DNA of 55,034 bases from Macrostomum lignano (Eukaryota). The notes beneath the pieces are model-generated. The model made no database searches. It worked only from the letters and a program-made list of their open reading frames with translations, and was not told where the DNA came from. Position 1 is the first letter of the stretch, and each line of letters begins with the position of its first letter. The stretch covers positions 1-55,034 of the forward strand of contig NIVC01000159.1 in assembly GCA_002269645.1 (NCBI GenBank). Direction: 5' to 3'. Shown here piece by piece: positions 3,094-52,269 of this stretch. The translations under genes were made by a program, and so were the position numbers.

Positions 3094-3772
3094 GTAAATT
3101 TTCTAATTGCACTGGGTCCTAGATATTCCTAGATACCCTCAGTACCCCTAGTGCGAGCATGCTTCCCTTTAGTGTATGGGAGTTTCCATCACCGCGCGTG
3201 ACCGCATGCTGTTTCCTGGAAAATCCCAGAATAGGCTTTTGTTTCAACCCGAATAAACTTGGCCCTCCATTCCGGTCTCCGCATGACTCCGGGTCGGACG
3301 AGCTCTGGCCGGGAAATAGGGGGGGGGCTAAAAATAGTCTTTGAGGCAGCGAACTCGGCTTCTGCTTCAAGCTGCGCAAAAACTGAAAGCAATATGAAAG
3401 TTTGCTTTTCTGCTTCTTCAAGGCCACGGAGCACTGATCAGAGGCAGCGGGTTATTCCGCAATAAAAAGCGACTATGAATTTCCTCGAGTTCCTGGCCGC
3501 AGAAGCAGCAAGCAGACGGAGTCACGCGCTCACTGAGCACTCTGCCGTAGAAAGACTTCCCTTAGTGGTTCTTTTAGCTTCAGCTGTAGCTGGATGAGAC
3601 ATCTTAGAAGCATCTTGTCAAATTAATTAAAATGTAGTCTGAGTTCACTGACTCAGAGGTTGAGTCCAGTTAGAAGCATCAATAGAAAAAATTCTCCTTT
3701 TTGCCTGAGCTGAGTGGCAGCTGCAATATTAAACTATGAACTCAGCTATGAGCTTATAATGGTTCTCTCCAG

Positions 3773-6170: not shown

Positions 6171-7562
6171 GGCTTCTCATGTGAGCCTGGCCAGGGAGTT
6201 TCAGAGAGAGAATATGGCTTCTCATGTGAGCCTGGCCAGGGAGTTTCAGATGGAGAATCTGGCTTCTCATGTGAGCCTGGCCAGGGAGTTTCAGATGGAG
6301 AATCTGGCTTCTCATGTGAGCCTGGCCAGGGAGTTTTAGAGGGAGAATCTGGCTTCTCATGTGAGCCTGGCCAGGGAGTTTTAGAGGGAGAATCTGGCTT
6401 CTCGTGTGAGCCTGGCCAGGGAGTTTTAGAGGGAGAATCTGGCTTCTCGTGTGAGCCTGGCCAGGGAGTTTCAGATGGAGAATCTGGCTTCTCATGTGAG
6501 CCTGGCCAGGGAGTTTTAGAGGGAGAATCTGGCTTCTCGTGTGAGCCTGGCCAGGGAGTTTTAGAGGGAGAATCTGGCTTCTCATGTGAGCCTGGCCAGG
6601 GAGTTTTAGAGGGAGAATCTGGCTTCTCGTGTGAGCCTGGCCAGGGAGTTTCAGATGGAGAATCTGGCTTCTCATGTGAGCCTGGCCAGGGAGTTTCAGA
6701 TGGAGAATCTGGCTTCTCGTGTGAGCCTGGCCAGGGAGTTTCAGATGGAGAATCTGGCTTCTCATGTGAGCCTGGCCAGGGAGTTTTAGAGGGAGAATCT
6801 GGCTTCTCGTGTGAGCCTGGCCAGGGAGTTTCAGATGGAGAATCTGGCTTCTCATGTGAGCCTGGCCAGGGAGTTTCAGATGGAGAATCTGGCTTCTCAT
6901 GTGAGCCTGGCCAGGGAGTTTCAGATGGAGAATCTGGCTTCTCATGTGAGCCTGGCCAGGGAGTTTTAGAGGGAGAATCTGGCTTCTCATGTGAGCCTGG
7001 CCAGGGAGTTTTAGAGGAGAATCTGGCTTCTCGTGTGAGCCTGGCCAGGGAGTTTCAGATGGAGAATCTGGCTTCTCATGTGAGCCTGGCCAGGGAGTTT
7101 CAGATGGAGAATCTGGCTTCTCGTGTGAGCCTGGCCAGGGAGTTTCAGATGGAGAATCTGGCTTCTCATGTGAGCCTGGCCAGGGAGTTTTAGAGGAGAA
7201 TCTGGCTTCTCGTGTGAGCCTGGCCAGGGAGTTTCAGATGGAGAATCTGGCTTCTCATGTGAGCCTGGCCAGGGAGTTTCAGATGGAGAATCTGGCTTCT
7301 CATGTGAGCCTGGCCAGGGAGTTTCAGATGGAGAATCTGGCTTCTCGTGTGAGCCTGGCCAGGGAGTTTTAGAGGGAGAATCTGGCTTCTCGTGTGAGCC
7401 TGGCCAGGGAGTTTTAGAGGGAGAATCTGGCTTCTCATGTGAGCCTGGCCAGGGAGTTTCAGATGGAGAATCTGGCTTCTCATGTGAGCCTGGCCAGGGA
7501 GTTTCAGATGGAGAATCTGGCTTCTCGTGTGAGCCTGGCCAGGGAGTTTTAGAGGGAGAATA
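6171..7562. repeat. 45-bp minisatellite, ~31 copies (Slp intron 2)
   Basis: GGCTTCTC(A/G)TGTGAGCCTGGCCAGGGAGTT(TCAGAT/TTAGAG)GGAGAATCT; 15-aa periodic ORFs. Confidence 0.97.
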
Positions 7563-8201
7563 TGGAGCGGAGGGCTCCATCGCTTATCCACTTTTTGAGG
7601 AGTTCAATACCCAGATTACTGCATAATTCCCCGAGCAAGTGTGCAAGCTAATGAGGGAGAATTATTTTGAAGTTTCTTTCAAATTCTTCTCTTGAAGGAA
7701 TTTTTTCAAGTCTACCGTTGTTAAAATGAGAAATGAGTCCCCAGTCCCAGTTGATCTGCTTTCTGTCCAGATTTGCATCTCAAGTGTCTTGAGTCGGGCC
7801 TGCCTTCCATTAACCGTCTGTAACGGCTCTCTCGCCTGGCTGTCGGGTTGTCTCCCTCTCGTCTCTCAAGCAGAAGGCCGGGTGTGAGGAGAATCCGCCA
7901 GCCGCACCCGCTTGACTCTCGGAGCTGCTCGCGGTCGTAAATCTTCCACGAGTCGTGGAGGATTCTTTGAGCGTTAAGCAGAAATTGCAGCAAAAGTTGC
8001 CGTCTTTGATGGCGAAACACGGAAATTGGGAGCGGAGCTGTTTGGGCCCTTTGCTGCAGTGACCTCGGGTGAACTCTGTGCCGAAATGATTGTGTGTGAC
8101 TGCCTGACAGATGGGCGGGCGGCAGCTTCAGGCCCAAGCACTATACATAAGTGTGCGTATTATCAGGTAATTGACTGAGATTACACTCCCAGTCATGCAT
8201 G

Positions 8202-8600
8202 TTGGCTAGATTAGCAATCCATTTTAGTCCCTTCATGATTGATTGGCTAGATTAGCAATCCACTCTATTCTGTTTATGATTGATGGGCTAGATTAGCAAT
8301 CCACTCTATTCTGTTTATGATTGATTGGCTAGATTAGCAATCCCCTCTATTATGTTTATGATTGATTGGCTAGATTAGCAATCCCCTCTATTATGTTTAT
8401 GATTGATTGGCTAGATTAGCAATCCACTCTATTCTGTTTATGATTGATTGGCTAGATTAGCAATCCCCTCTATTATGTTTATGATTGATTGCCTAGATTA
8501 GCAATCCACTCTATTCTGTTTATGATTGATTGGCTAGATTAGCAATCCCCTCTACTATGTTTATGATTGATTGGCTAGATTAGTAATCCACTCTAATTAT
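8202..8600. repeat. 41-bp minisatellite, ~10 copies (Slp intron 2)
   Basis: TTGGCTAGATTAGCAATCC(A/C)CTCTATT(C/A)TGTTTATGATTGA; unit starts at 8243, 8284, 8325. Confidence 0.95.
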
Positions 8601-10650: not shown

Positions 10651-12270
10651 GGGGGATGCTTTCTATCTGGGGTATGCTTGCTATCTGGGGGATGCTTGCT
10701 ATCTGGGGATGCTTGCTATCTGGGGATGCTTGCTATCTGGGGGATGCTTGCTATCTGGGGATGCTTGCTATCTGGGGGATGCTTGCTATCTGGGGATGCT
10801 TGCTATCTGGGGGGTGCTTGCTATCTGGGTGGATGCTTGCTATCTGGGGGATGCTTGCTATCTGGGTGGATGCTTGCTATCTGAGGGATGCTTGCTATCT
10901 GGGTGGATGCTTGCTATCTGGGGGATGCTTGCTATCTGGGTGGATGCTTGCTATCTGGGTGGATGCTTGCTATCTGGGTGGATGCTTGCTATCTGGGTGG
11001 ATGCTTGCTATCTGGGTGGATGCTTGCTATCTGGGGGATGCTTGCTATCTGGGTGGATGCTTGCTATCTGGGTGGATGCTTGCTATCTGGGGATGCTTGC
11101 TATCTGGGGGATGCTTGCTATCTGGGGATGCTTGCTATCTGGGGGATGCTTGCTATCTGGGGATGCTTGCTATCTGGGGATGCTTGCTATCTGGGGGATG
11201 CTTGCTATCTGGGTGGATGCTTGCTATCTGAGGGATGCTTGCTATCTGGGTGGATGCTTGCTATCTGGGGGATGCTTGCTATCTGGGTGGATGCTTGCTA
11301 TCTGGGTGGATGCTTGCTATCTGGGTGGATGCTTGCTATCTGGGTGGATGCTTGCTATCTGGGTGGATGCTTGCTATCTGGGGGATGCTTGCTATCTGGG
11401 TGGATGCTTGCTATCTGGGTGGATGCTTGCTATCTGGGTGGATGCTTGCTATCTGGGGGATGCTTGCTATCTGGGGATGCTTGCTATCTGGGTGGATGCT
11501 TGCTATCTGGGGATGCTTGCTATCTGGGGGATGCTTGCTATCTGGGGATGCTTGCTATCTGGGGGGTGCTTGCTATCTGGGTGGATGCTTGCTATCTGGG
11601 GGATGCTTGCTATCTGGGTGGATGCTTGCTATCTGAGGGATGCTTGCTATCTGGGTGGATGCTTGCTATCTGGGGGATGCTTGCTATCTGGGTGGATGCT
11701 TGCTATCTGGGTGGATGCTTGCTATCTGGGTGGATGCTTGCTATCTGGGTGGATGCTTGCTATCTGGGTGGATGCTTGCTATCTGGGTGGATGCTTGCTA
11801 TCTGGGTGGATGCTTGCTATCTGGGTGGATGCTTGCTATCTGGGTGGATGCTTGCTATCTGAGGGATGCTTGCTATCTGGGGGATGCTTGCTATCTGGGT
11901 GGATGCTTGCTATCTGGGTGGATGCTTGCTATCTGGGTGGATGCTTGCTATCTGGGGGATGCTTGCTATCTGGGGATGCTTGCTATCTGGGGGATGCTTG
12001 CTATCTGGGGATGCTTGCTATCTGGGGGATGCTTGCTATCTGGGTGGATGCTTGCTATCTGGGGGGTGCTTGCTATCTGGGGGATGCTTGCTATCTGGGT
12101 GAATGCTTGCTATCTGGGGGATGCTTGCTATCTGGGGGATGCTTGCTATCTGGGGGATGCTTGCTATCTGGGTGGATGCTTGCTATCTGGGGGATGCTTG
12201 CTATCTGGGGGATGCTTGCTATCTGGGTGGATGCTTGCTATCTGGGGGATGCTTGCTATCTGGGTGGATG
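10651..12270. repeat. 18-19-bp minisatellite, ~85 copies (Slp intron 3)
   Basis: GATGCTTGCTATCTGGG(T/G)G with a variable G-run. Confidence 0.97.
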
Positions 12271-12774
12271 CCTGTTGCCTTTGTGAAACCTTTATTTTTG
12301 TGTACTTTTGTTACTTTTAGAAAAAAGAGATTCATAACAAACGCCTTTGTCCATGACAATTTTACTCGAATAAGGTGATTTATGAAACCGAAGAAGGAAT
12401 CGGTTCTTAAGAAAAAGTGCTTTTTAATGGATTTGCTTGAATAATTTTTGCTACTTGCTTATTGGGCGCCCCAAAGGGGGCACTAGATTGCTAGCACTGT
12501 TTCTCATAGTGAATTGTCCGTCTACCTGGATGGAGTGCATTCGTCTGGAGCAACTTTGTCTATGGCAAAACTCCATTTAGCCCCATTCCTTATAGCTTTT
12601 TCTAAGATATGTTTGCCAAAGTAATGGAGCTTTTGTCTGTGGTATCAAGGCGTATCTAACACAGACAAAAATGTATCTTGCATAAAATTCAGTGCGCGTA
12701 GGCCCAACTGGGCTGCAAAAAGCTATATTTTATATTGTTATTACTTTCATCCAATGCTCTCTGCGGCCTTCCAG

Positions 12775-13091: not shown

Positions 13092-13241
13092 GTAAGAGGA
13101 ACTGAAACCTGCGCTGCTGAAATACCCGATAATTCCCGGAAATTCTCCCACTCTCAGCATCTGCAATCTGGGGCCGACCGAGCGCCATCTCCATCGCGAA
13201 GGTGTCCGGTGGCCACAGTATTTTTGGACTTGTCGAGCGGT

Positions 13242-15650
13242 CCATGAGGACCAATCCCCTCCATGAGGACCAATCCCCTCCATGAGGACTAACCCCTCCA
13301 TGAGGACCAATCCCCTCCATGAGGACCAACCCCCTCCATGAAGACCAACCCTCTCCATGAGGACCAACCACCTCCATGAGGACCAACCCCCTCCATGACC
13401 AATTCCCTTACATGAGGACCAACCCCCTCCATGAGGACCAATCCCCTCCATGAGGACTAATCCCCTACATGAGGACCAACCCTCTCCATGAGGACCATTG
13501 ACCAACCCCCTCCATGAAGACCAATCCGCTCCATGACCGATCCCCTCCATGACCAACCACCTCCATGACCAATTCCCTTCCATGAGGACCAACCCCCTCC
13601 ATGAAGACCAATCCGCTCCATGACCGATCCCCTCCATGACCAACCACCTCCATGACCAATTCCTTTCCATGAGGACCAATCCCCTCCATGAGGACCAACC
13701 CTCTCCATGAGGACCAACCACCTCCATGAGGACCAACCCCCTCCATGACCAATTCCCTTCCATGAGGACCAACCCCCTCCATGAAGACCAATCCGCTCCA
13801 TGACCGATCCCCTCCATGACCAACCACCTCCATGACCAATTCCTTTCCATGAGGACCAATCCCCTCCATGAGGACCAACCCTCTCCATGAGGACCAACCA
13901 CCTCCATGAGGACCAACCCCCTCCATGACCAATTCCCTTACATGAGGACCAACCCCCTCCATGAAGACCAATCCCCTCCATGAGGACCAACCCCCTCCAT
14001 GAGGACCAATCCCCTCCATGAGGACCAACCCCCTCCATGAGGACTAACCCCTCCATGAGGACCAACCACCTCCATGAGGACCAACCCCCTCCATGACCAA
14101 TTCCCTTACATGAGGACCAACCCCCTCCATGAAGACCAATCCCCTCCATGAGGACCAACCCCCTCCATGAGGACCAATCCCCTCCATGAGGACTAATCCC
14201 CTACATGAGGACCAACCCTCTCCATGAGGACCATTGACCAACCCCCTCCATGAAGACCAATCCGCTCCATGACCAATCCCCTCCATGACCAACCACCTCC
14301 ATGACCAATTCCCTTCCATGAGGACCAACCCCCTCCATGAAGACCAATCCGCTCCATGACCGATCCCCTCCATGACCAACCACCTCCATGACCAATTCCT
14401 TTCCATGAGGACCAATCCCCTCCATGAGGACCAATCCCCTCCATGAGGACTAACCCCTCCATGAGGACCAATCCCCTTCATGAGGACCAACCCCCTCCAT
14501 GAAGACCAACCCTCTCCATGAGGACCAACCACCTCCATGAGGACTAACCCCTCCATGAGGACCAATCCCCTTCATGAGGACCAACCCCCTCCATGAAGAC
14601 CAACCCTCTCCATGAGGACCAACCACCTCCATGAGGACCAAACCCCTCCATGACCAATTCCCTTACATGAGGACCAACCCCCTCCATGAAGACCAATCCC
14701 CTCCATGAGGACCAACCCCCTCCATGAGGACCAATCCCCTCCATGAAGACCAATCCCCTATATGAGGACCAACCCTCTCCATGAGGACCATTGACCAACC
14801 CCCTCCATGAAGACCAATCCGCTCCATGACCGATCCCCTCCATGACCAACCACCTCCATGACCAATTCCCTTCCATGAGGACCAATCCCCTCCATGAGGA
14901 CCAATCCCCTTCATGAGGACCAATTTCCATTCATGAGGACCAATCCCCTCCATGAGGACCAATTTCCATTCATGAGGACCAATCCCCTCCATGAGGACCA
15001 ATCCCCTCCATGAGGACCAATCCCCTCCATGAGGACTAACCCCTCCATGAGGACCAATCCCCTTCATGAGGACCAACCCCCTCCATGAAGACCAACCCTC
15101 TCCATGAGGACCAACCACCTCCATGAGGACCAAACCCCTCCATGACCAATTCCCTTACATGAGGACCAACCCCCTCCATGAAGACCAATCCCCTCCATGA
15201 GGACCAACCCCCTCCATGAGGACCAATCCCCTCCATGAGGACCAATCCCCTACATGAGGACCAACCCTCTCCATGAGGACCATTGACCAACCCCCTCCAT
15301 GAAGACCAATCCGCTCCATGACCGATCCCCTCCATGACCAACCACCTCCATGACCAATTCCCTTCCATGAGGACCAATCCCCTCCATGAGGACCAATCCC
15401 CTTCATGAGGACCAATTTCCATTCATGAGGACCAATCCCCTCCATGAGGACCAATTTCCATTCATGAGGACCAATCCCCTCCATGAGGACCAATCCCCTC
15501 CATGAGGACCAATCCCCTCCATGAGGACCAATCCCCTCCATGAGGACCAATCCCCTCCATGAGGACCAATCCCCTCCATGAGGACCAATCCCCTTCATGA
15601 GGACCAATTTCCATTCATGAGGACCCATCCCCTCCATGAGGACCAACCCC
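13242..15650. repeat. 16-19-bp satellite with higher-order structure, ~130 monomers (Slp intron 4)
   Basis: CCATGAGGACCAATCCCCT family with recurring variant cassettes. Near-identical ORFs at 14544 and 15036 imply a 492-bp duplication. Confidence 0.95.
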
Positions 15651-15841
15651 CAGAGCACAGAATTTGAAGGCTCTTGAAGATTAAAAATTCAGGGCCGCCG
15701 CACACCCTGCGTGCCGCCTGTGGGAATTGCAGCATGCGTGCTTTGTGGATTTTGGACAGTGCATGAAGGTCCCCTTGCAAACCAATTGTCCGATTTCTCC
15801 CCTTCCTCTCTTATCCTCGAATCCCCCCAACTCCCTCCCAG

Positions 15842-35989: not shown

Positions 35990-37835
35990 GCTCAGTTAGC
36001 CTGGTCGGGGGCAGGCAGTTAAACCCCCAGCCAATCAAAATGCGTGAACTCCCCTACGGCTCAGTTAGCCCGGTCGGGGGCAGACAGTTAAACCCCCAGC
36101 CAATCAAAATGCGTGAACTCCCCTACGGCTCAGTTAGCCCGGTCGGGGGCAGACAGTTAAACCCCCAGCCAATCAAAATGCGTGAACTCCCCTACGGCTC
36201 AGTTAGCCCGGTCGGGGGCAGACAGTTAAACCCCCAGCCAATCAAAATGCGTGAACTCCCCTACGGCTCAGTTAGCCCGGTCGGGGGCAGGCAGTTAAAC
36301 GCCCAGCCAATCAAAATGCGTGAACTCCCCTACGGCTCAGTTAGCCCGGTCGGGGCAGACAGTTAAACCCCCAGCCAATCAAAATGCGTGAACTCCCCTA
36401 CGGCTCAGTTAGCCCGGTCGGGGGCAGACAGTTAAACCCCCAGCCAATCAAAATGCGTGAACTCCCCTACGGCTCAGTTAGCCCGGTCGGGGGCAGACAG
36501 TTAAACCCCAGCCAATCAAAATGCGTGAACTCCCCTACGGCTCAGTTAGCCCGGTCGGGGGCAGACAGTTAAACCCCCAGCCAATCAAAATGCGTGAACT
36601 CCCCTACGGCTCAGTTAGCCCGGTCGGGGGCAGACAGTTAAACCCCCAGCCAATCAAAATGCGTGAACTCCCCTACGGCTCAGTTAGCCCGGTCGGGGGC
36701 AGACAGTTAAACCCCCAGCCAATCAAAATGCGTGAACTCCCCTACGGCTCAGTTAGCCCGGTCGGGGGCAGACAGTTAAACCCCCAGCCAATCAAAATGC
36801 GTGAACTCCCCTACGGCTCAGTTAGCCCGGTCGGGGGCAGACAGTTAAACCCCCAGCCAATCAAAATGCGTGAACTCCCCTACGGCTCAGTTAGCCCGGT
36901 CGGGGCAGACAGTTAAACCCCCAGCCAATCAAAATGCGTGAACTCCCCTACGGCTCAGTTAGCCCGGTCGGGGGCAGACAGTTAAACCCCAGCCAATCAA
37001 AATGCGTGAACTCCCCTACGGCTCAGTTAGCCCGGTCGGGGGCAGACAGTTAAACCCCCAGCCAATCAAAATGCGTGAACTCCCCTACGGCTCAGTTAGC
37101 CCGGTCGGGGGCAGACAGTTAAACCCCCAGCCAATCAAAATGCGTGAACTCCCCTACGGCTCAGTTAGCCCGGTCGGGGGCAGACAGTTAAACCCCCAGC
37201 CAATCAAAATGCGTGAACTCCCCTACGGCTCAGTTAGCCCGGTCGGGGGCAGACAGTTAAACCCCCAGCCAATCAAAATGCGTGAACTCCCCTACGGCTC
37301 AGTTAGCCCGGTCGGGGGCAGGCAGTTAAACCCCCAGCCAATCAAAATGCGTGAACTCCCCTACGGCTCAGTTAGCCCGGTCGGGCAGACAGTTAAACCC
37401 CCAGCCAATCAAAATGCGTGAACTCCCCTACGGCTCAGTTAGCCCGGTCGGGGGCAGACAGTTAAACCCCCAGCCAATCAAAATGCGTGAACTCCCCTAC
37501 GGCTCAGTTAGCCCGGTCGGGGGCAGACAGTTAAACGCCCAGCCAATCAAAATGCGTGAACTCCCCTACGGCTCAGTTAGCCCGGTCGGGGGCAGACAGT
37601 TAAACCCCCAGCCAATCAAAATGCGTGAACTCCCCTACGGCTCAGTTAGCCCGGTCGGGGCAGACAGTTAAACCCCCAGCCAATCAAAATGCGTGAACTC
37701 CCCTACGGCTCAGTTAGCCCGGTCGGGGGCAGGCAGTTAAACGCCCAGCCAATCAAAATGCGTGAACTCCCCCACGGCTCAGTTAGCCCGGTCGGGGGCA
37801 GGCAGTTAAACGCCCAGCCAATCAAAATGCGTGAA
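35990..37835. repeat. 69-bp minisatellite, ~27 copies, intergenic
   Basis: CAGTTAAACCCCCAGCCAATCAAAATGCGTGAACTCCCCTACGGCTCAGTTAGCCCGGTCGGGGGCAGA; 23-aa periodic ORFs. Confidence 0.97.
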
Positions 37836-38055
37836 TTCCAAGTCGCATAGATAAGAGACAGCACTGCAAGTTCTACACAAGCAAGCAAATTTTATTTAAA
37901 ATATTTTTCGCCGTATATTTAAATGAAGCTTATGAAAATGGCACAGCTACAGAAATAATGACCTGAGCGAATTTAGCAATTAGATACCGCGATTTCCCTC
38001 AGCACAAGTCTGAGTTTTATTTGAGTTCAATATACGCTCGCAAAATATCAGTTGC

Positions 38056-38715: not shown

Positions 38716-39859
38716 TTCAGTGCGGTTGCAGCAGCGCAACCCTCTCAATCTGATCGAGTTGTGTATGCGTCTCAATAATGAGGTTTATGGATTACTTGTA
38801 AGTGTCAGTGACGACCTCGCTCTCGCCGTAATTATATAGAGGTGGCTGTGCGGCACGGTTCCCTAATTGCAGCTCTATAAATGCGTCATTGCCGAACCGA
38901 TCTGGAATCCGTTACGCAAAACTTGCAAGCATCTGGAACTGTACAAAGCTTTGAAAGGCGTGTGTTTTTAGCAGACTTATTTATAGAGCACCTGTTTATA
39001 TTAGGATGAATAGAGTAATTAAAAAACACAGAACTCGATATTTTGCGCATGTTTTTGGCCCGATGAACAAATTTCGGCTTGCGTGTTCTGTAGCTCGATT
39101 CGAAATAAAGTATGTAAAGCGGTTGTTTTTTTTTACCGTGGGAGTGGTCAGATATTCAATTTAGACTAATTCAGAAAAGTAGAAGAATAAAGATTTGAAT
39201 TGTAAAATCTCTCACATAGTCCGAAAAAGTGGCGTGTGGCTATGGCTAACTAAATAGCTTTTAATCCAGAAACCAGTCTCGGTCAACCTGCACGAGGTTC
39301 GACCCCCATTTTTAGTGTGTCGCAGCTGGGGTTCACAGGGGGTCACAGGGGGTCACGAGCCAGTGCCACAACATGAAGCCCATAAAATGTCATTGCTTGC
39401 TTTGCTACAAAAGTTTTATCTCTCGATGATCAAAACAAAAAAGGAAATTATTTTCGCAAGATTTTTGGCACCCCACGAACGATATTTTGGTCACATATCA
39501 GCCACATATAGTGTCTATATTCTACTAATTCCTGAGCTCGTACAAACAGATAATGTGTACGCAGGCATGCACTCATGCGAGCGTATATACACACGCTCGC
39601 ACAGGATGTTATTTTTTTTTTCCGACGAAATCAAGAGTCCCAAAGAGTCCTCCTTTGGGAGAGGAGGACTTTTATAGCGTTGGAAGCAAAAAAACTCTGC
39701 ATCAAAAATATCAATACAGGCCCGTACATTTATTCTGCAAATGTACTGTCTCTTCACTTTACGGTGTCTTTTTGGTCTCCACAAAAGCTGTCACAATAAG
39801 AAGGATGTGAGTGAGGCATATGCTGATAACCATGACCAATTTGCCAGACAGTAAATAAT

Positions 39860-41700
39860 ACAGCTAACGTTCTCCACACCGACCGGTCTTACTACGATTA
39901 TAAAATTTGGCTTCTGAAATTTTGCAGCGAGTGATGACCTCCGTCCTCAGCGGCCTCCAAGGCGTATGCTCGGTGCACGATGACATTCTGGTATATGCGG
40001 CGAGGGACATCAAACAACACAACCAGCGCCTAACAGACTGTCTGTCCCGACTGAAAGAGCACAACATCACGCTGAACCCCTAGAAACTTGGACTTCCTTG
40101 TGGACTTCCTCGCTATGCAAATTTAGAGCAGTTGGCATCCACCCAAGCCAGGAGAAAGTGGAAGCCGTTAACAACTTTAAGCGACAAACCAATCCAACAG
40201 AAGTACGATCGATCCTCTGCCTGGTCACTTTTGTGGTACGCTTCATCAGCAACCTATCGGACAGTTGCGAGATCTGAAAAGGCAAGCCGCTGAGTGGACT
40301 TGGGGTGAACAGCAAGAAGCCGCGTTCAACGACTTAAGCTTTAAGTTAACCATCGCTTAGCAGCCAGGCACTGGCATTCTTCGACAGCAAACTGCACCCC
40401 CAGCTGATCGTGGATGCCAGCCAACTGGGGTCGGCGCCATCCTAGCTCAAGTCCAGCGTGACGGGTCGACGCGGCCAGTGGCCTACGCCAGTTGCAGCCT
40501 GAGCGCCACGGAGCAGCGTTATTCCCAGATCGAACGAGAAGCCCTGGCGGTGAAATACGGCGGCCTAAAGTTCCATCATTACCTGAGCGGCGGCGGGTCC
40601 TTCAAAGTCATCACCGACCACATGCCGCTGGTGTCTCTATTCAGGCCTGGATTTCGGGCCGCCTCGCATCGAGCGTATGGCTCTTCGCCTTCATGATCTG
40701 GTCTTCCAGATGGTGTACCAGCCGGGAGCTAATAACCCATCTGATGTACTGAGCCGCCAGCCTCTGCTGAGGCCACCAAAAAACGTCGGGGAGCATGCGG
40801 ACGCCGTCTACATGGCTTCGGCGGTGGAAGCGGCAACCCCAGTGTCCATTAACTCAGCAACCATTAAAGCAGCCTCAAACCAAGACGCCATCACCAAAGC
40901 AGCAATCCACGACATCCGATGCCACCGCTTGGACAAAGGCAACCCGGACCTCAAGGGGCAGCACGGCGTGGCTCACGAGCTGTCGGAGACAGATGGTATG
41001 CTTCTGCGCAACAGCCAGCTGTACATGCCCTCGGCGCTGCGATATCGATGCCTGCAGCTAGCGCACCAGGGCCGCCAGGGCATGAAAAAGACTCTGGAGC
41101 GCCTGCAAACGAAGGTCTGGTGGCCAGGCAGGAGGACATCGATAGAGGCGCACGTGGCCTCCCGCAGAAGCTGTCAAGTTTGCACCAGCGCGACTACACC
41201 TAGAGCTACGCCCCTGAAACCGACTGAACTTCCAGACGGGCCCTGGCTCGAACTCGGGATGGACTTCCTGAGGCCTGTGAACGGCAAGTCGTGGCTTGTG
41301 TACACCGACCAATTCTCAAGGTTACCAGTGGTGGAGATCATGTCCAGCACCACAGCCTCCGCCGTCACCCGTACTCCGGAAGTGGTTCAGCACCTTCGGA
41401 CAACCTGCCAAAGTGCAGACGACGGACAACGGACCGCCCTTCGCATCATTCGAGTTCAGCAACTTTTTGTCAGAGCAAGGCGCGCGACACCACAGAATCA
41501 CATCGCTCTACCCACAAGCTAATGGAGCAACAGAGCGGTGTAACTAGGGACTCAACAAGGACATCCGTGCAGCCATGGCCGAAGGCAGGGACTGGACGGT
41601 GGCCGTCGATGAGTAACTTGCAGCGTACAGGCGCACCCCGCACTGTGGTCACGGGTGTCGCTCCAGCCAGTCTTCTGTTTGGAAAACATTTGGCATCCAA
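39860..41700 (+). mobile_element. Degenerate 5'-truncated Ty3/Gypsy LTR-retrotransposon pol (RT-RNaseH-integrase)
   Basis: RT SVHDDILVY. RNaseH LIVDAS...PVAYASCSLSATEQRYSQIEREALAV...VITDH. Integrase zinc finger HQGRQGMKKT...WWPG...CQVC and core DNGPPF...YPQANGATER. Many frameshifts and stops. Gag and protease not seen. Confidence 0.92.
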
Positions 41701-41743
41701 AGCCTGTTTCTTTTTATTTCCCAATGATTTTTAATCCGCGCTT

Positions 41744-42090
41744 GGGGAGAGGAATGTAACATGTGACGCCGTCAGCTATGATTTTAGAGCTATGGGGTGC
41801 ATGTACATGCCATTCTATTTATCTTACTATGCCTACGCGCGCACTCAGCATGCACTTCTCACACATGCACGTTGTTCAATATGCAAATCGATGTACATCG
41901 CTGCTACAATATAAATGCTAATGTTGGGGGGGCTAACCTTTTCTTCGCTCATCGTAAGCTCCGGCCTAGATATTATAGTCATTTCACTGATTTCACTGGC
42001 AAAAAAATATTATTCCAAATTAAATAATACTAGCTCGATCCTGTTAGCTAAAAAAACAGATAGGGGCCAACTGTGCCAAATACAATCAAA
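41744..42090 (+). mobile_element. Polypurine tract and probable start of the 3' LTR; right end uncertain
   Basis: GGGGAGAGGAA (41744-41754) immediately followed by TGTAAC, just after the integrase. No matching 5' LTR found in the window. Confidence 0.55.
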
Positions 42091-42229
42091 TGTGGCATTT
42101 AGAATTAAGAATCGTGTCCACTGCTAAACGTGTATCGCATTTTAACAAGCAATTAGGCTCTAGTAAACAAGAAATGCAAGTTTCGTGGGGCCTTTTTAGC
42201 CAAGTTGTTTTGCTCGAGCCAGTTACTAC

Positions 42230-45200
42230 TGGCCTACTAGGCCTACTTTCTACTACTTTTGTCAAATTGCAAATTGATTAATAGTTCACAGTTATAGGCC
42301 TAAGGCTATACTGAATTCCGGTTTAGAATAAAAAAATAACCAAGAGCTGTCTTCATTAGTTGAGTAAACTAATGTTGAAGACATTGTTGGCTTTGTTCCA
42401 ATTAAACAGTAAAGTCAGAAATTAATTGGACTATATTTGTAAAGTTTAGACTTGGTGTTGCTTAGGCCTACACTTTAATTTAAGGCCAAATTTTCTTAGG
42501 CCTATAGGCCTATTTTTTAAAGTGAAATGTGAAATGAGCATATGCCTTTGATGTTATATTTCATTGATGCTATATTTCATCCATTCATGTAGCTAGTACT
42601 AGTAGTAGGCTTAGCCTACTTGCTACTTAAGTAACTTAATTCTTAATTAATATAGTAGAGTTAGGCCTAGGCTACCAACATCTCTACAATAGGCTACCCT
42701 TTATATTGTTGAGCCTTTAGCCTATAGATATATCTAGATATTTTATATTTATAATCCTTAAGTTATAGGAATTTAAATAATAGGGCCTATTATTAGTATT
42801 AATTCCCTAATTTAATTTTACATAGGCCTATTCAAAAAACTTCACTTAGGCCTAATCCTATTGTTTCTAAAAATATTCATTTCTTAAATACAAGATAGGC
42901 CTATGCCTTGTTCAAATTACTTAAACCTATTTTATTTATATTTGAATATATTCATTGACAACATATGGGATTGACAAATTGAAGTTAGTCACATTACTAA
43001 TAAATATTGTTTTTTTGTTTTTTGTTTTTTTTGTCATTTTGGATACCTCTTATAACTGTCTATCAAAATTCAGAAAAAGAAAAATAGAAGTATTTTAACA
43101 ACTTAAGCTTGAAAAATTGTATTTAATTTAGAATATTAGGCCTAGACTATATAGTATATGCCTTAGGCTAGGTAGGCCTAGGCTATAATATAGTTTATAA
43201 TTCTAAATTAGGCTTACTTAAATTTAATAGGGGGCCTAAAATACTAATAGGCATGTTATTAATAAATTGATAGGCCTAATAGTAGATTAAAAGTCCTAAA
43301 ATCTCAAAATTCTAAAAAATATTAATCTTATATTATCAATATTATTATTATTATAGGGCCTATTGTTACAAGGCCAACTCTTCCATTGGAGGAAAAAGGG
43401 GAAGAACTCTTATCACTAGAATTCCATTCCCTGAAATCCATTAGCTATATCCTATAACCTAAGGCTAAATCCAATCATCTAAATCCTCTCCAAAATCCAT
43501 TAAAATCATTTCCATAAAATAGAAATCCCTAAAAATCTTCTCTATGAAACAGAACAGATATTTATCAAAATTCTTTCCATGAAATGAAACTCTATCAATA
43601 TTATCTCCTTCAAGTTTTAATCCATGAAGTTAACAGACTGTTGAATTGAAGTGTATAAAAAGGTGCTTTCTAATTGTCTAGCCTTAATATATTCAAAATA
43701 CAGTATTTAGTAGTTAGGGTTAAGATTAGAGCTGCACAGAGCTGCCTATTAAAAGGTGCTAGTAAAAAATGGAACCAATTGATTGTGCAATTGATTTTAG
43801 TCAGTATCAGTCTTAGTTAAAGTTGATAAAATGATTGTGAAATCTAAATCATATATGCCCAACACCCATCCAGCCTATCCAAACTAAATGGGTAAAATGG
43901 CTATTGGCCAAGGTAAGTCGCAAAATTGAAAATGCAAAAAACAAAAAATTGGAGGAAAAAGAAAGGAGAGAAAGAGAAAAGGAAAAGAAAGGAAAGAGAA
44001 GAGAGAGAGAAGAAAGAGGAAAGAAAAAGAAAAAAAGAGAAAAAGGCAAGAAAAGTCATATAGAAAATGAAAATTAAGTCGCAATTGGGAGGAACTAAGT
44101 CGCAAATCTGGTCAAAACTAAGTTGCACTAGACAGTGAAATTTTAAGGCTGGGCATATATGATCTAAATCAACCCTCCAATATACTGCAGCAATTAGAAG
44201 TTAAAGCCCCCAAATTTATTTATTGCGTCTTGCAAAAATAAGTACAATCTTTACAGAAAGTTAAAAGTATAGAAATTTTCTTGAATGTTATGCTTTTAGT
44301 TTTCATACTTAAAGCAAACAACTTAAATCCCCAAACTTAGCATTAAAATATCTTTCTAGCAACATAAGTCTTTTCTCTCAAAGTTCAAAACTCAAGTAAC
44401 AGTTTGTGTTTGAAATTTCCCAGTTTAAAGCATTGAATTTTTGAGTGTTATACATTCAGTGCCTGCTACAGAAGTTTATGCATTGAATTTCACTGTTTGC
44501 CAGTTAGCAATGGTCTAAGTGTACACACATAGCCACTTAGAATGCCCCCATCCCCCACTGGAAAGAAAATGCACTGCTAAGATAGGCAAAAGTTGTGGTG
44601 CAACCATTCAAAATTGATGCAAATTTAAGAGATTTCTTATTTTTTAATTTTATAAATAAATATAGATTTGTATATTTATATTATGAAATGCTAAGTAGGC
44701 TTGTCCTTGATAAAAATTAATATGATTTATTTACATTGAAAAATTAATAAAATTTAAAATTGATATCATATTATAATATAATGTACCTTTTTAGATATGT
44801 TGAGGCCTAGCCAAAATTTTTCTTTAAAGAGATAAGCTATTAAGATTTTCTTCTAAGTTTAAAAATTCTATCTCTCCATAAAATAGGCCTTTTTAATAAA
44901 ATTAAATATTACACATATACAATACCCAGCCAAGTTGGCTAATCCAGCTAGCTTATAAAGGGCCTAACCAAAGTAAATTGCAAAAATGGTCACCTAAAAA
45001 TAGATTTGAGTACTAATAATGCAGTCATAGTTACTCTTGCCATTTATCATATAAAATTATATTCATTTTGCTTAGGTTTTTTCATAACTAAGTTACATTT
45101 TTGGTCAAAAAAGTGTGACTAATATGTTGTATAGTTTGTGTAAATGAAGGGGTTGTGCATATATGTTAAATTTATTATATGTTATGCTATTTCTAATATA

Positions 45201-46300
45201 TATTTAGGCCTATACTTATATGCTTAATATATAAATGGTATAAATGTAGCTGTATGTAGGGCATTTCTATCAAGTTTGTTTTTTATGTTTCTTGCATCTT
45301 TTCTTGTATCTTTTATTTTAGAATAGTCTAAGAGAAATTGCTCACTGGTGCATAGAGTGGCAACTTTTCAATGTTGCTGAGTATATATTTTTATGACCTT
45401 TTTATGGGTCAATAAAATTTCAAACAATGAAAAAATTGATTTGAAAATGGGTCAAATATTCAAAAAAATTTTTGTGCTTTCAATATTTGAATTTTGAATT
45501 TGAATGCTCCTATGGAGGCTTAATGCGCAAGTAGAAACTAATTTGTCATCCAAAGCAAATATTTATACATAAAAGTATAAATAGTATAAGCGTATAATTA
45601 CTAAATTTATGTATATAAAGCAATTAATTGTCTTTTTATTCTTTCTCTAGATATATTTTTTGTATGTTGTGGCCTCCAATTAGACTATCTGTTGTGCTTA
45701 TGTGTTTAGTATTTAGAATATCTAGAACCAGTTGAACAATCAATAATTCTGACCTCTCTGCTCATAATGTACATGAAAAGGTCCAGTTTCTTACAAGCGT
45801 ATTTCTAAATATAGCCAGGCTCTTGCCTTGGTTTAACTATTTTCCAACTGTTTAAAATTTTAATTTCCTCCTGTTGTTAATTTTAGCTTCTTCAAGTGCT
45901 GGTCATTCTTGATTAGTTGTGCTACTAAGTCTAAATAGCAATAACTTGTCTTTTTTGTCTTTTTATAACAAATAGACATATTGATATTATACTGTTCATA
46001 CTCGTATAATATATAAAGTAAATCTCTGCTTTTGGGCTACAAGAACTTTCTTGTTTCTATTGGGAAAACAAAGCATAATAATATTAATGTAGTTAGTCAA
46101 AAGTCTTGTCCTTTAAAAAATTCTTAAAATGAAAAATAATGTTTTCCAAGGCGACTTACTTGTATGGTATATTGAAAACTGTCTCAGGAAACCAAGATAT
46201 TGCCATACCTAACTGCTTTTAAATCTATTATTTCATGGAAATTTGGTAATTTGTATTCTCAGTCTGCTTAGCCCAGCGGCTGGTTCAAAACAGAAAATTC
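42230..46300. other. AT-rich, CpG-depleted domain enriched in TAGGCCTA, upstream of the epsin ATG (5'-UTR intron, outron or promoter-proximal region)
   Basis: About 11 CpG counted in ~4 kb, none seen between ~42321 and 43918. About 15 AGGCCT copies. Confidence 0.8.
43850..44161. mobile_element. 312-bp hAT-like MITE
   Basis: TIRs CATATATGCCCAAC / GCTGGGCATATATG (13/14 match). Perfect 8-bp TSD ATCTAAAT at 43842-43849 and 44162-44169. Repeated subterminal AAGTCGCAA. Confidence 0.85.
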
Positions 46301-46358
46301 ACAACCTAGCAAACATACCTACTGCCTACTAATAGTAGCACGCGCGGTTACAGCAGTC

Positions 46359-46932
46359 ATGACGGCTATTCGGCGCAACATTAAGAATGTGGTGCACAAT
46401 TACTCCGACGCCAAAGTGAAGGTTCGTGAAGCCACCTCCAATGATCCGTGGGGTCCGTCCAGCACGCTGATGGCGGAGATCGCCGAGATGACCTACAATG
46501 TCATGGCCTACACGGAGATCATGTCGCTGATTTGGAAGCGCCTGAACGACAAGAACAAGAACTGGCGGCACGTGTACAAGGCCCTGGTGCTGCTGGACTA
46601 CCTGGTGAAGACAGGCAGCGAGAAGGTGGCCCAGCAGTGCAAGGAGAATCTCTTTGTAATCCAATCGCTGAGGGATTTCCAGTACACCGAGGAGGCCAAG
46701 GACTATGGCCAGAATGTTCGCGAGAAGGCCAAGCAGCTGGTGGCGCTGCTCAAAGACGATGAGAAGCTGCGGACTGAGCGGGCCAGCGCTCTGCGCACCC
46801 GCGAGCGCCTTCACGCCAGCGGCATGATCGGCGGCGGCCGGCCCACCGTGTCGTCTGGCGCGACTGCCTACCGGAGGGCCAGCGCCGAGTACGCCTCCGA
46901 CCGGACCGGCAGCAGCGTCCGAGGAGCTCCTG
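46359..46932 (+). CDS. EPN: Epsin exon 1, ENTH domain
   Basis: MTAIRRNIKNVVHNYSDAKVKVREATSNDPWGPSSTLMAEIA...KNWRHVYKALVLLDYLVKTGSE. Donor G|GTGAGC, phase 1. Confidence 0.97.
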
Positions 46933-47027
46933 GTGAGCGCTTCCTGCATTTGAAGGGGTTAACCTGACTGTTTTAGGGCAATCTTTTTGGAGGATTTCCA
47001 GCGAATATCTTCTGGTGATTCTTCAAC

Positions 47028-47470
47028 TCCAATCCTGGGGATTCCCTACTCTAATCCTGGGGATTCCCTACTCCAATCCTGGGGATTCCCTGCTCTAATC
47101 CTGGGGATTCCCTAGTCTAATCCTGGGGATTCCCTACTCCAATCCTGGGGATTCCCTGCTCTAATCCTGGGGATTCCCTACTCTAATCCTGGGGATTCCC
47201 TACTCTAATCCTGGGGATTCCCTAGTCTAATTCTAGGAATTCTCTACTCTAATCCTTGAGATTCCCTACTCTAATCCTGGGGATTCCCTAATCTAATCCT
47301 GGGGATTCCCTACTCCAATCCTGGGGATTCCCTGCTCTAATCCTGGGGATTCCCTACTCTAATCCTGGGGATTCCCTACTCTAATCCTGGGGATTCCCTA
47401 CTCTAATCCTGGGGATTCCCTACTCTAATCCTAAGGATTCCCTGCTCTAATCCCGAGGATTACTGCTCTC
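47028..47470. repeat. 22-bp minisatellite, ~20 copies (epsin intron 1)
   Basis: TCCTGGGGATTCCCTACTCTAA. Confidence 0.96.
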
Positions 47471-48264: not shown

Positions 48265-48790
48265 CTTCCAAATCTCCCATCCCAGATCCCCATGTTGTAG
48301 AATCTCCCATCCCAGATCCCCATGTTGTAGAATCTCCCATCCCAGATCCCCATGCTTTGGAAACTCCCATCCCCAGATCCCCATGTTGTAGAATCTCCTA
48401 TCCCAGATCCCCATGTTGTAGAATCTCCCATCCCAGATCCCCATGTTGTAGAATCTCCCATCCCAGATCCCCATGTTTTGGAAACTCCCATCCCCAGATC
48501 CCCATGTTGTGGAGACTTCCATCCCCAGATCCCCATGTTGTGGAGACTTCCATCCCCAGATCCCCATGTTGTGTAATCTCCCATCTCAGATCCGTACGTT
48601 GTGGAGACTCCCATCCAAGATCCCCATGCTGGGAAAATCCCATCCCATTCAGATCCCCATTTTGTGGAAACTCCCATCCCCAGATCCCTATGCTTGGAAA
48701 ATCCCATGCTAGGAAATTCCTATCCTAGATCCCCATGTGGACACTCTCATCCCAGATCCCCATGCTTGAAAAATTCCCATCCCTGATCAC
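48265..48790. repeat. 30-31-bp minisatellite, ~17 copies, decaying 3' (epsin intron 3)
   Basis: TCCCATCCCAGATCCCCATGTTGTAGAATC and variants. Confidence 0.93.
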
Positions 48791-49295: not shown

Positions 49296-49399
49296 GTGAG
49301 TTCGATCCACATTCACCCACATTCTCGGTGGGGTCACTATCACACTTCAGGGTTCACTGCTCCCGTTCACCCATTCTGTATGACCACATTCGCAAGGTT

Positions 49400-49740
49400 A
49401 CATGAACTCATTCACCCAGTTTCTCTGCGGGGTAGCCCAAGGGTTCATGACCTCATTCACCCACTTTCTCTGCGGGGTAACCCAAGGGTTCATGACCTCA
49501 TTCACCCACTTTCTCTGCGGGGTAACCCAAGGGTTCATGACCTCATTCAGCCACTTTCTCTGCGGGGTAGCCCAAGGGTTCATGACCTCATTCAGCCACT
49601 TTCTCTTCGGGGTAGCCCAAGGGTTCATGACCTCATTCAGCCACTTTCTCTGCGGGATAGCCCAAGGGTTCATGACCTCATTCAGCCACTTTCTCTGCGG
49701 GATAGCCCAAGGGTTCATGACCTCATTCAGCCACTTTCTC
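49400..49740. repeat. 45-bp minisatellite, ~7.5 copies (epsin intron 5)
   Basis: CATGACCTCATTCAGCCACTTTCTCTGCGGGGTAGCCCAAGGGTT. Confidence 0.95.
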
Positions 49741-50402: not shown

Positions 50403-50475
<73 letters not shown>

Positions 50476-50500
50476 CGGGCAGGCAGGCAGGCAGGCAGGC

Positions 50501-50538
<38 letters not shown>

Positions 50539-51742
50539 TCAGCAGGCAGATGGGACAGTCAGTCAGCAGACTCAGGCAGATGGCACAGACAGCAGGCAGA
50601 TGGCACAGACAGCTGGCAGATGGCACAGGCAGATGGCACAGACAGCAGGCAGATGGCACAGACAGCAGGCAGATGGCACAGACAGCTGGCAGATGGCACA
50701 GGCAGATGGCACAGACAGCAGGCAGATGGCACAGACAGCAGGCAGATGGCACAGACAGCTGGCAGATGGCACAGGCAGATGGCACAGACAGCAGGCAGAT
50801 GGCACAGACAGCAGGTAGATGGCACAGACAGCTGGCAGATGGCACAGTCAGCAGGCAGATGGCACAGACAGCAGGCAGATGGCACAGACAGCTGGCAGAT
50901 GGCACAGGCAGATGGCACAGACAGCAGGCAGATGGCACAGACAGCAGGCAGATGGCACAGACAGCTGGCAGATGGCACAGGCAGATGGCACAGACAGCAG
51001 GCAGATGGCACAGACAGCAGGCAGATGGCACAGACAGCTGGCAGATGGCACAGGCAGATGGCACAGACAGCAGGCAGATGGCACAGACAGCAGGCAGATG
51101 GCACAGACAGCTGGCAGATGGCACAGGCAGATGGCACAGACAGCAGGCAGATGGCACAGACAGCAGGCAGATGGCACAGACAGCTGGCAGATGGCACAGG
51201 CAGATGGCACAGACAGCAGGCAGATGGCACAGACAGCAGGTAGATGGCACAGACAGCTGGCAGATGGCACAGTCAGCAGGCAGATGGCACAGACAGCAGG
51301 CAGATGGCACAGACAGCTGGCAGATGGCACAGTCAGCAGGCAGATGGCACAGACAGCAGGCAGATGGCACAGACAGCTGGCAGATGGCACAGTCAGCAGG
51401 CAGATGGCACAGACAGCAGGCAGATGGCACAGACAGCAGGCAGATGGCACAGACAGCTGGCAGATGGCACAGTCAGCAGGCAGATGGCACAGACAGCAGG
51501 TAGATGGCACAGACAGCTGGCAGATGGCACAGGCTGCAGGCAGATGGCACAGACAGCAGGCAGATGGCACAGGCAGATGGCGCAGTCAGCAGGCAGATGG
51601 CACAGACAGCAGGCAGATGGCACAGGCAGATGGCGCAGTCAGCAGGCAGATGGCACAGTCAGCAGGCAGATGGCACAGGCAGATGGCACAGTCAGCAGGC
51701 AGATGGCACAGTCAGCAGGCAGATGGCACAGGCAGCAGGCAG
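50398..51742. repeat. Compound (GACA)n(GGCA)n(GATA)n microsatellite followed by a GGCAGATGGCACAGACAGCA-type minisatellite (epsin intron 5)
   Basis: Tetramer runs at 50398-50536, then mixed 12-bp and 20-bp monomers. Confidence 0.96.
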
Positions 51743-51792
51743 ACCCAAGCTCACACCAAGCCGCAGTGCAACCCCGATCCCGCGCTCCGCAG

Positions 51793-52099
51793 GCAGCACC
51801 AATCCGTTCGCGCCGGTGATCCACGGGCCCAGCCACCCCAGCAACCCGTTCCACTCCACTCAGCCCGTGCAGCCGACTCTCTCCGAGCTGCAGCGCCGGG
51901 CTGCTTACGGCGGCGACACCGGGTTCGGCGTCAGCGGTAACGGCAGCGCCGGTGGCGTCCTTCCGCCTCCGCTGATCGAGGCGCCCCAGCAGCCGCCGCC
52001 GCTGCAGCCGCCGGCTTATCCGGCCGCCTTCAATCCCTGGGGCCAGCAGCAGCAGCCGCCAGCAGCCGCCGGCTACCCAGCCACAACCCCTTCATGTAG
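51793..52099 (+). CDS. EPN: Epsin terminal exon, NPF motifs; apparent 1-nt deletion before the final NPFM*
   Basis: Acceptor CCGCAG|GC. STNPF, SNPF and FNPW lie in one frame. AAC CCC TTC ATG TAG (52085-52099) lies in the -1 frame. Confidence 0.8.
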
Positions 52100-52269
52100 C
52101 CCCTGGTGGGGAGAGGGGTTGAGAAGATTCTGCCAAGCTGGTTCGTTACGGTTTTTGTGTGTCTGCATATATATATTCTAGATAGAGCTCTGCTTGATGT
52201 CCCTGCGGTCTCTGTCGGAGATCTTCGCGTTCGGGCTGTCTGAGCGCTTTGGCGCCGCCACCTACCCAT

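Follow-up and report, generated by a model that had tools for sequence, protein, structure and literature searches.

Transposons of the Tc1/mariner type mark the sites that they leave. Their excision involves a cut in the non-transferred strand a few nucleotides within the element, after which end joining traps the terminal nucleotides between two TAs, giving a footprint that is flanked by TA and has the first or last 2–4 nt of the element as its core; that of Sleeping Beauty is TAC(A/T)GTA (PMC6943129). Here we describe a family of short palindromic words of similar build in Macrostomum lignano, in a 55,034-nt stretch that makes up the whole of contig NIVC01000159.1 (GCA_002269645.1, positions 1 to 55,034, forward strand; hereafter the window) whose accession series belongs to the assembly Mlig_3_7 (PMC5730564). 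The commonest member is TAGGCCTA, and the family is crowded into an AT-rich, CpG-depleted domain that is non-coding and lies directly 5′ of an epsin gene, with a defunct retroelement fragment on one side and the epsin start codon on the other. With Tc1/mariner footprints the family shares a duplicated TA around a core, a palindromic or near-palindromic scar, heterogeneity at the centre and a net gain of 5–6 bp. To our knowledge, no genome has been described in which a footprint is the most over-represented 8-mer, nor a locus with ~20 footprints per kb.

Other short iterated units invite comparison. The cyanobacterial highly iterated palindrome HIP1 (GCGATCGC) is 8 bp long, far outnumbers other words and has no extended consensus. 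It thus shares with TAGGCCTA the form of one dominant 8-bp palindrome without an extended consensus, but it is bacterial, and we know of no report that it spreads by insertion with target duplication. The mobile GC clusters of yeast mitochondria are short G+C-rich palindromic units in AT-rich spacers with a short duplicated target; they are 30–40 bp long and organellar, whereas the unit here is 4 nt and nuclear. Finally, the PHIS transposons (PIF/Harbinger, ISL2EU, Pangu and Nuwa) are widespread in animals and have terminal inverted repeats that usually start with GG (GGG in NuwaI), like the ends considered here, but their duplications are TWA, AT, ANT or TNA, in contrast to the 2-bp TA duplication at our filled sites (PMC4482050).

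TAGGCCTA occurs 13 times in the window and always within the domain, with 12 copies in 42238–43278 and one at 45205. Dinucleotide shuffles of the whole window give an expectation of 0.65, and none of 100 shuffles reached 13; a first-order Markov model of the domain gives 0.11, a 113-fold excess. A first-pass annotation, made from the letters alone, had pointed to clustered AGGCCT and to several related words. Both are real: AGGCCT occurs 15 times in 42001–46000, and the related words form one family, TA-G(n)C(m)-TA, whose 22 members differ solely in the number of central G and C. Thirteen are (2,2), that is TAGGCCTA, four are TAGGCTA, two TAGCCTA, two TAGGGCCTA and one TAGGGGGCCTA. The family spans 42238–43364 plus 45205, and 20 of the 27 GGCC sites in 41900–46400 are followed by TA. 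Members also overlap in micro-arrays, among them TAGGCCTAGGCTA (at 42662 and 43173), TAGGCCTATAGGCCTA (a perfect tandem at 42497–42512) and TAGGCTAGGTAGGCCTAGGCTA. Across ~95 kb of M. lignano DNA examined for the spread of TAGGCCTA, one copy was seen, and a literature search for the word, alone or with transposition terms, returned only primers and unrelated bacterial operators.

Several familiar kinds of repeat were considered and rejected. As the annotation had held, the copies are not a tandem repeat or satellite: Tandem Repeats Finder places no array over them, their spacers are unrelated and there is no long-range periodicity. The autocorrelation of the motif zone has its top lag at 6, with a weak z=3.3, and rules out a decayed ~160-bp satellite. 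Miniature inverted-repeat transposable elements, with each copy an element end, fail for want of sub-terminal inverted similarity or an extended consensus. A known AT-rich transposable element (TE), which the annotation had named as an explanation that would undo its own, finds no counterpart in inverted or direct repeats at the domain boundaries, in a Pfam match in six frames or in any remnant of a known TE protein.

We next compared the locus with its paralogues. M. lignano carries three subgenomes (S, L1 and L2) with a single-nucleotide divergence of 1.9–2.4% (PMC10733133). The window contains a 612-amino-acid (aa) open reading frame that is on record for NIVC01000159.1, and the two paralogues of its protein on other contigs gave access to two paralogous loci, L002 and L003. 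L003 2240–3714 is homologous to window 41746–43240 and lies in the same place relative to the conserved flanks, and L003 2240–3231 is the counterpart of the motif zone, with a GC content of 0.28, a CpG observed/expected ratio (o/e) of 0.26, 3 perfect TAGGCCTA and 11 family members. Family density in the zone is 19 members per kb in the window and 11 in L003, versus about 0.01 per kb elsewhere. No further copy of the domain turned up in L002, in L003 or elsewhere in the window.

Because L003 carries a homologous motif zone, the island is neither a contaminant nor a misjoin, and it had its character before the subgenomes separated. A foreign origin, contamination (from the diatom food, say) or an assembly misjoin had some appeal, since the composition changes abruptly at both edges and the worms are fed Nitzschia. 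Yet an independent contig of another subgenome holds the homologous left 1.4 kb in its proper place, and the domain lacks organelle features, open reading frames (ORFs), tRNA and rRNA. ORFs of at least 60 aa were low-complexity only; ORF scans under codes 1, 4, 6, 9 and 14 gave nothing; a Pfam search of six stop-masked frames gave no match; and a tRNA scan, an Rfam search and a comparison with phage records were all empty. The absence of ORF, Pfam, tRNA and Rfam signals speaks against a coding, organellar or known RNA origin for the domain. For 41746–43240 a foreign origin or misjoin is largely refuted, and overall we give it next to no credence.

The paralogues also reveal how quickly this spacer changes. 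Divergence between the window and L003 was measured in ungapped blocks of at least 37 columns, with 6 trimmed from each end. Relative to noncoding flanks, the motif zone has ~4x the substitutions, 7–9x the transitions per G/C site and 4–8x the insertions and deletions (indels) (Table 1), while the divergence of coding sequence is 0.9%. The flanks agree with the published figure for the whole genome, and the zone therefore evolves ~4x faster than the norm. In the broad sense, the localized mutational signature that the annotation had suspected is supported: the domain is an old AT-rich spacer that is evolving unusually fast. This view covers its left part; the right 3 kb was not seen in a paralogue, as TE insertions interrupt both fetched loci. 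In L003 a different insertion begins at the point equivalent to window ~43240, and in L002 another TE sits ahead of the zone.

Further irregularities surround this boundary. Subgenome divergence rises from 2.1–2.8% to 4.8–9.7% right of ~39.5 kb (39582–43165), the retroelement fragment included, and L002 is likewise ~9% diverged over 40190–40538. L003 is without the integrase part of the pol fragment (window 40590–41746), with the junction at a short microhomology. Each paralogue has a different TE insertion at or beside the AT-rich domain (L003 1–2130 and L002 1–4127). The homology between the window and L003 stops at a family member (window 43228, L003 2240).

Within the zone, motif copies come and go through short insertions and deletions. 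Only two of the 11 aligned window copies are intact in L003 (42662 and 43137). Three are one substitution off, reading TAGGCTTA, TAGACCTA and TAGGCCCA in L003, and six fall in indels: relative to L003 the window has +14, +10/11, +10 and +10, and there is one complex replacement. On the L003 side, one +6 makes TAGGCCTA (with adjacent substitutions) and one +5 makes TAGCC-TAGGCC, and one homologous site reads TAGGGGGCCTA in the window and TAGGCCCCCCTA in L003. Positions 43160–43185 hold four units of 5–6 bp in the window and two in L003. Perfect copies outnumber one-substitution variants 12 to 2 in the window, which, in a zone diverged by 8.5–9.7%, indicates that the copies are young or continually renewed.

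Turnover of this kind bears on the idea of a regulatory element. Identity to L003 is 72% for motif bases versus 83% for other zone bases (Fisher p=0.005), and 67% for the core G/C of the motif versus 77% for other G/C; C/T and G/A differences also occur within GGCC at paralogous sites. Motif bases are thus less conserved than the spacer, which argues against selected binding sites and equally against any sparing of GGCC. A cluster of sites for a putative dimeric DNA-binding protein (a promoter, insulator or boundary upstream of epsin), kept as a whole with individual sites turning over, would sit well with a perfect 8-bp palindrome at such enrichment, with its persistence in both paralogues, with its position 3–4 kb 5′ of a housekeeping gene and with TAGGCCTA arrays in phage and giant-virus contigs that resemble operator or iteron arrays. 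It does not sit well with sites that yield faster than their surroundings in a zone already diverging ~4x faster than ordinary noncoding DNA, with gains through insertion rather than point mutation, or with the placement of sites in another animal (below), which resembles that of random TA sites across repeats. Moreover, no TAGGCCTA was found at the 5′ regions of the window's other genes, or at the other 5′ regions in three paralogous contigs. The annotation's proposal of selected sites marking housekeeping 5′ regions is therefore not supported, and we regard a binding cluster in general as quite improbable.

To define the word outside M. lignano, public collections were scanned for three TAGGCCTA spaced by 0–30 bases. 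Matches comprised 17 viral contigs, mostly with regular iteron-like arrays, and at least 120 metagenome contigs. Among the matches listed, to which the following results refer, 84 metagenome contigs from a few recurrent JGI (Joint Genome Institute) sample series look like animal DNA. Between 6 and 32% of their length lies in stop-free stretches of at least 100 aa (64% in L044). L065 encodes a rhodopsin-type receptor split over two ORFs (7tm_1, E=2e-5), and two ORFs, with no Pfam match, read as C-terminal tails of reverse transcriptases of the non-LTR (non-long-terminal-repeat) type. Animal-like contigs from different samples have dispersed repeats in common and share nothing with the M. lignano window.

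Ascertainment bias was avoided by dropping 900 bp around each selecting cluster, which left 262 kb (GC 0.43, CpG o/e 0.95). These hold 148 copies of TAGGCCTA versus 2.3 expected, an excess of ~65x and the highest observed/expected ratio of any 8-mer seen at least 25 times; the next palindrome reaches 8-fold. The variants recur as well, with 55 TAGCCTA, 48 TAGGCTA and 9 TAGGGCCTA. No consensus extends beyond the eight bases in these contigs. In placement the sites match random TA sites (flank GC 0.418 vs 0.419), ruling out a preference for AT-rich targets in this animal. Hence, in the genome of at least one further animal TAGGCCTA occurs in its own right, untied to AT-rich or CpG-poor DNA, and the annotation's guess that a similar bias may occur in other animals is borne out.

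Diverged repeat copies in the animal-like contigs revealed how the word arises. Indels of 3–9 bp were compared over 25.8 kb of alignment. Of the 25 six-bp indels, seven convert a single TA to TAGGCCTA by an exact insertion, and one 7-bp indel makes TAGGGCCTA from TA; among indels of 3, 5, 8 and 9 bp between repeat copies, none makes the motif. The rule TA → TA-GGCC-TA (+6) is therefore directly shown in the repeats of the metagenome animal.

The scan also turned up TAGGCCTA in other settings. L056, L131, L085, L117 and L121 carry telomere-like arrays (TTAGGG, CTAGGG and CTAGCC units) in both orientations, and the word stands at head-to-head junctions of these arrays, a second and unrelated origin. 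Phage and giant-virus contigs (L004–L020) contain short TAGGCCTA arrays that resemble iterons or operators, for example L013 4561–4793 and L015 6455–6504. In the animal-like contig L065, positions 3137–3175 form a perfect 39-bp palindrome, TAGGCCTACCACTCATAATAATTATGAGTGGTAGGCCTA, which could be what little is left of the two ends of an element, or a palindrome with a scar on either side.

Our tentative explanation, to which we give a little less than even weight, is that the TAGGCCTA family consists of scars resembling excision footprints, left by an element that targets TA and has GG..CC ends. The underlying event would be a recurrent insertional mutation, TA → TA-GGCC-TA (+6 bp), in which a duplicated TA comes to surround a constant 4-nt core: a TA-targeting cut-and-paste transposon with GG..CC ends would excise, the break would be rejoined and the scar would remain. 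Imprecise rejoining, or later 1-nt slips, would produce the centre variants TAGGCTA, TAGCCTA and TAGGGCCTA. Re-insertion at the TA of an existing scar, followed by excision, would build overlapping units that recur every 6 bp (or 5 bp), as in TAGGCCTAGGCTA, TAGGCCTATAGGCCTA and TAGGCTAGGTAGGCCTAGGCTA, and two re-insertion events of this model would give the four-unit run at 43160–43185. The 1.1-kb zone would then be a landing and departure site used repeatedly through local hopping; the raised substitution rate would be compatible with a break-and-repair hot spot as well. Three of these steps are inferred: the reading of the +6 events as transposon footprints, the origin of the M. lignano copies in the same process, and the local hopping.

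Several features are those expected of footprints. Element ends are inverted repeats, so that their scars should be palindromic with heterogeneity at the centre, as in this family; TAGGCTA, TAGCCTA, TAGGGCCTA and TAGGGGGCCTA vary just in the number of central G and C. A duplicated TA around the scar, opposite an empty site with a single TA, is seen in seven clean 6-bp cases and one 7-bp case in the metagenome repeats, and M. lignano adds one +6 case with adjacent substitutions. The window's +10 at 43160–43185 is exactly reproduced by two model events from the L003 state.

Other observations weigh against this explanation. No inverted-repeat element of the form TA|GG..CC|TA was found in the window, L001–L003 or 120 metagenome contigs (~0.6 Mb searched). 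Tc1/mariner termini usually begin with CA, CC or TT; we know of no described family among them that begins with GG, and of no described terminus that the GGCC core would match. The motif-linked indels of M. lignano are +14, +10/11, +10 and +10 with only one clean +6, so the model fits in part. Dropping all family units removes just 16 of 174 gap columns, which indicates that the zone is indel-prone for other reasons too, and slippage clearly contributes, as the tandem at 42497–42512 attests. In the metagenome repeats, 5-bp indels that make 7-mer variants number 0 of 24. More than 20 fixed cycles of insertion and excision within 1.1 kb would be an extreme density, and AT-richness fails to account for the restriction to 1.1 kb, given that metagenome sites are distributed as random TA sites would be. 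Gains and losses are unpolarised, the third copy, L002, being interrupted by a TE before the zone. Lastly, in those PHIS groups whose ends begin with GG, the duplications are TWA, AT, ANT or TNA and not TA (PMC4482050).

Two variants of the transposon scheme were examined and discarded. A PIF/Harbinger-type 3-bp duplication conflicts with the base after GGCC, which is always T-A and not TTA/TAA on both sides. A GGC/GCC 3-nt overhang model predicts the blunt-join product TAGGCGCCTA, which is absent, and the metagenome repeats have no +5 events to match.

Could the copies have arisen without any transposon? Replication slippage, or 'cryptic simplicity', would multiply a self-complementary word (TAGGCC/CTAGG units) in this low-complexity, AT-rich DNA through short tandem duplication and template switching. 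The perfect tandem TAGGCCTATAGGCCTA at 42497–42512 speaks for it, as do the four versus two units at 43160–43185 in window and L003, the TAGCC-TAGGCC duplication in L003 and the top autocorrelation lag of 6, and most zone indels are unrelated to the motif. The relative simplicity factor of the zone is 1.66 (z=8), but control segments of the window score similarly without any motif. Slippage copies neighbouring sequence, and it leaves unexplained both the dispersed copies that stand 20–240 bp apart in unrelated spacer and the exact +6 at isolated single TAs in another animal's unrelated repeats. As the source of the family as a whole we consider it unlikely.

It is also conceivable, though rather unlikely in our estimate, that an undescribed process inserts a constant GGCC core at TA with duplication of the TA, and that it has been active in at least two animal lineages. 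Such a process could be a new TA-targeting element that leaves only scars, or a nuclease or repair activity unlike classical excision. Acting repeatedly, it would generate hypervariable, AT-rich, CpG-poor islands like the one upstream of epsin.

We then turned to the composition of the domain. Over 42230–46300 (4071 bp), GC is 0.291 and there are exactly 11 CpG (o/e 0.13), with none from 42319 to 43919, much as the first-pass annotation had counted; the remainder of the window has GC 0.52 and o/e 0.67. In 300-bp windows inside the domain, GC stays within 0.24–0.34 and CpG o/e within 0–0.4. Other AT-rich patches of the window (GC 0.33–0.40) have CpG o/e of 0.43–1.47, the exception being a 41-bp minisatellite at 8202–8595 (0 CpG in 8251–8550). 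At 300-bp resolution across the whole window, the domain is the sole extended stretch of unique sequence that is both AT-rich and CpG-poor. Both edges are abrupt, and GC and CpG are normal again from ~46270. The annotation's description of the neighbouring arrays as CpG-rich holds only in part, several minisatellites being CpG-free (11001–12000, for instance, has 0 CpG at GC 0.53).

The annotation had offered AID-type deamination as one source of this desert. Taken more broadly, domain-restricted cytosine deamination, AID/APOBEC-like or resembling repeat-induced point mutation (RIP), would have eroded a formerly GC-richer sequence while sparing GGCC, leaving TAGGCCTA. Transitions per G/C site at 7–9x the flanks would be in keeping with it, as would the clustering of G and C (GpC o/e 1.6, CpC o/e 1.5). 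So would 42230–43300, where TpA/ApT is 1.32 and (CpA+TpG)/(ApC+GpT) is 1.00, within the usual RIP thresholds (>0.89 and <1.03). The right 3 kb (43300–46300), however, fails the same indices at 0.96 and 1.45, and the motif-poor 3 kb has a WRC o/e of 1.00, an NTC o/e of 0.89 and an SYC o/e of only 1.28. Core G/C bases are unprotected, as the paralogue identities above attest, with C/T and G/A changes inside GGCC itself. Deamination would also require 13 pre-existing YAGGCCTR precursors, whereas one-transition variants of the motif are rare (2 vs 12 perfect) and the motif differences between paralogues are mostly indels. Above all, erosion cannot cluster an 8-mer palindrome 113-fold. We therefore hold deamination to be very improbable as the origin of the motif cluster; fungal-type RIP in particular was set aside, its indices passing in 42230–43300 only and the organism being an animal. 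The domain may have undergone an older phase of erosion. At 27 sites the window has A/T where L003 has G/C, and at another 27 the situation is reversed; with two copies only, the direction of change is not inferable, and this symmetry is also expected from two equally eroding lineages.

The loss of CpG appears to be a matter distinct from the motif. Since GpC is enriched (o/e 1.62), it is CpG in particular that is depleted, and the 12-fold gap between GpC and CpG points to a CpG-specific process; the other animal's motif DNA has a CpG o/e of 0.95, and motif and desert are therefore separable. The most plausible cause would be long-term CpG decay under local germline methylation. M. lignano keeps DNMT1 and DNMT3, and its 5-methylcytosine level is low, with no published methylation map (PMC11292947, PMC9246332, PMC10658182). 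Like germline-methylated domains in mosaic invertebrate methylomes, the desert combines strong CpG-specific depletion with CpG-normal DNA alongside. Those domains are usually housekeeping gene bodies, whereas here the adjacent epsin exon is CpG-normal and there is no TpG/CpA excess; methylation at this locus would thus not be of the ordinary gene-body type. CpG sites change ~1.5x as often as other G/C sites in the flanks, as expected for unmethylated DNA, and 1.6x as often in the pre-desert segment, while too few CpGs are left inside the zone. Six sites are CpG in L003 and TpG/CpA in the window, against one in reverse, a comparison that is suggestive but unpolarised.

Table 1. Features of the locus in window coordinates, with divergence from L003 where measured
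Feature	Position	Strand	Description	Substitutions	Transitions per G/C site	Indels per 100 bp
AT-rich, CpG-depleted non-coding domain	42230..46300	.	GC 0.29, CpG o/e 0.13, GpC o/e 1.62			
Motif zone	42229..43364	.	21 of 22 family members			
TAGGCCTA starts in zone	42238, 42295, 42463, 42497, 42505, 42662, 42823, 42847, 42896, 43137, 43173, 43271					
Variant starts in zone	42612, 42668, 42690, 42718, 42781, 43164, 43179, 43228, 43354					
Isolated TAGGCCTA	45205..45212	.	motif-poor right part of domain			
Motif zone, aligned part	42229-43165			9.7%	0.216	3.2
Pre-desert segment, ~480 bp	41746..42228	.	GC 0.40, CpG o/e 0.86; directly 3′ of retroelement pol; no motif copy	5.8% (to 6.4%)	0.077	2.21
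Segment left of pre-desert	40188-40590			4.8%	0.052	0.72
Noncoding flanks	29.8-39.4 kb			2.1-2.8%	0.023-0.033	0.4-0.8
328-bp unit between 20-nt inverted repeats (90% complementary)	43842..44169	.	AG-rich tract, 3 x TAAGTCGCAA, 1 x TAAGTTGCAC			
Truncated Gypsy-like retroelement pol fragment (RNase H + integrase ORFs)	40190..41734	+	homologues carry PF17917, PF17921, PF00665			
Epsin first coding ORF (ENTH domain)	46359..46967	+	ATG 46359; 73-78% identity to metazoan epsins with PF01417; ORF end not necessarily exon end			

The surroundings of the domain can be described briefly. Protein searches with the epsin and with the retroelement pol returned no M. lignano entry among their matches. The NPF-rich C-terminal part of epsin apparently lies at 51504–52181, ~5 kb 3′ to the ENTH exon, and minisatellite arrays separate the two parts (47026–47461, 48271–48780, 49393–49740 and 50405–51743). 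Non-coding DNA of this contig consists largely of long minisatellite arrays with periods of 17–73 bp and up to 129 copies, at 6171–7565, 10651–12271, 13241–15651, 35990–37839, 50540–51743 and elsewhere; some are CpG-free through their unit sequence. Inside the desert, three of the 11 CpGs sit in the repeated word TAAGTCGCAA of the unit at 43842–44169.

Taken together, the observation is real and strongly non-random. What is new here is best filed as footprint-like insertional scars that have reached an unusual density in a spacer that is itself hypervariable. Should the scars prove to be transposon footprints, excision can mark a genome statistically more strongly than the element itself: in the metagenome contigs, one 8-mer would be the most over-represented word and, among repeats, account for more than a quarter of the 6-bp indels. 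Past cut-and-paste activity could then be traced cheaply across a genome by means of such words, which would also give rise to false 'motif discoveries' in the vicinity of genes. For M. lignano, a transgenic regeneration model, the sharply bounded CpG desert beside CpG-normal DNA is a concrete place to seek germline methylation. The divergence between subgenome copies, four-fold higher than elsewhere, in turn marks a local mutation hot spot for which the three subgenomes serve as internal replicates.

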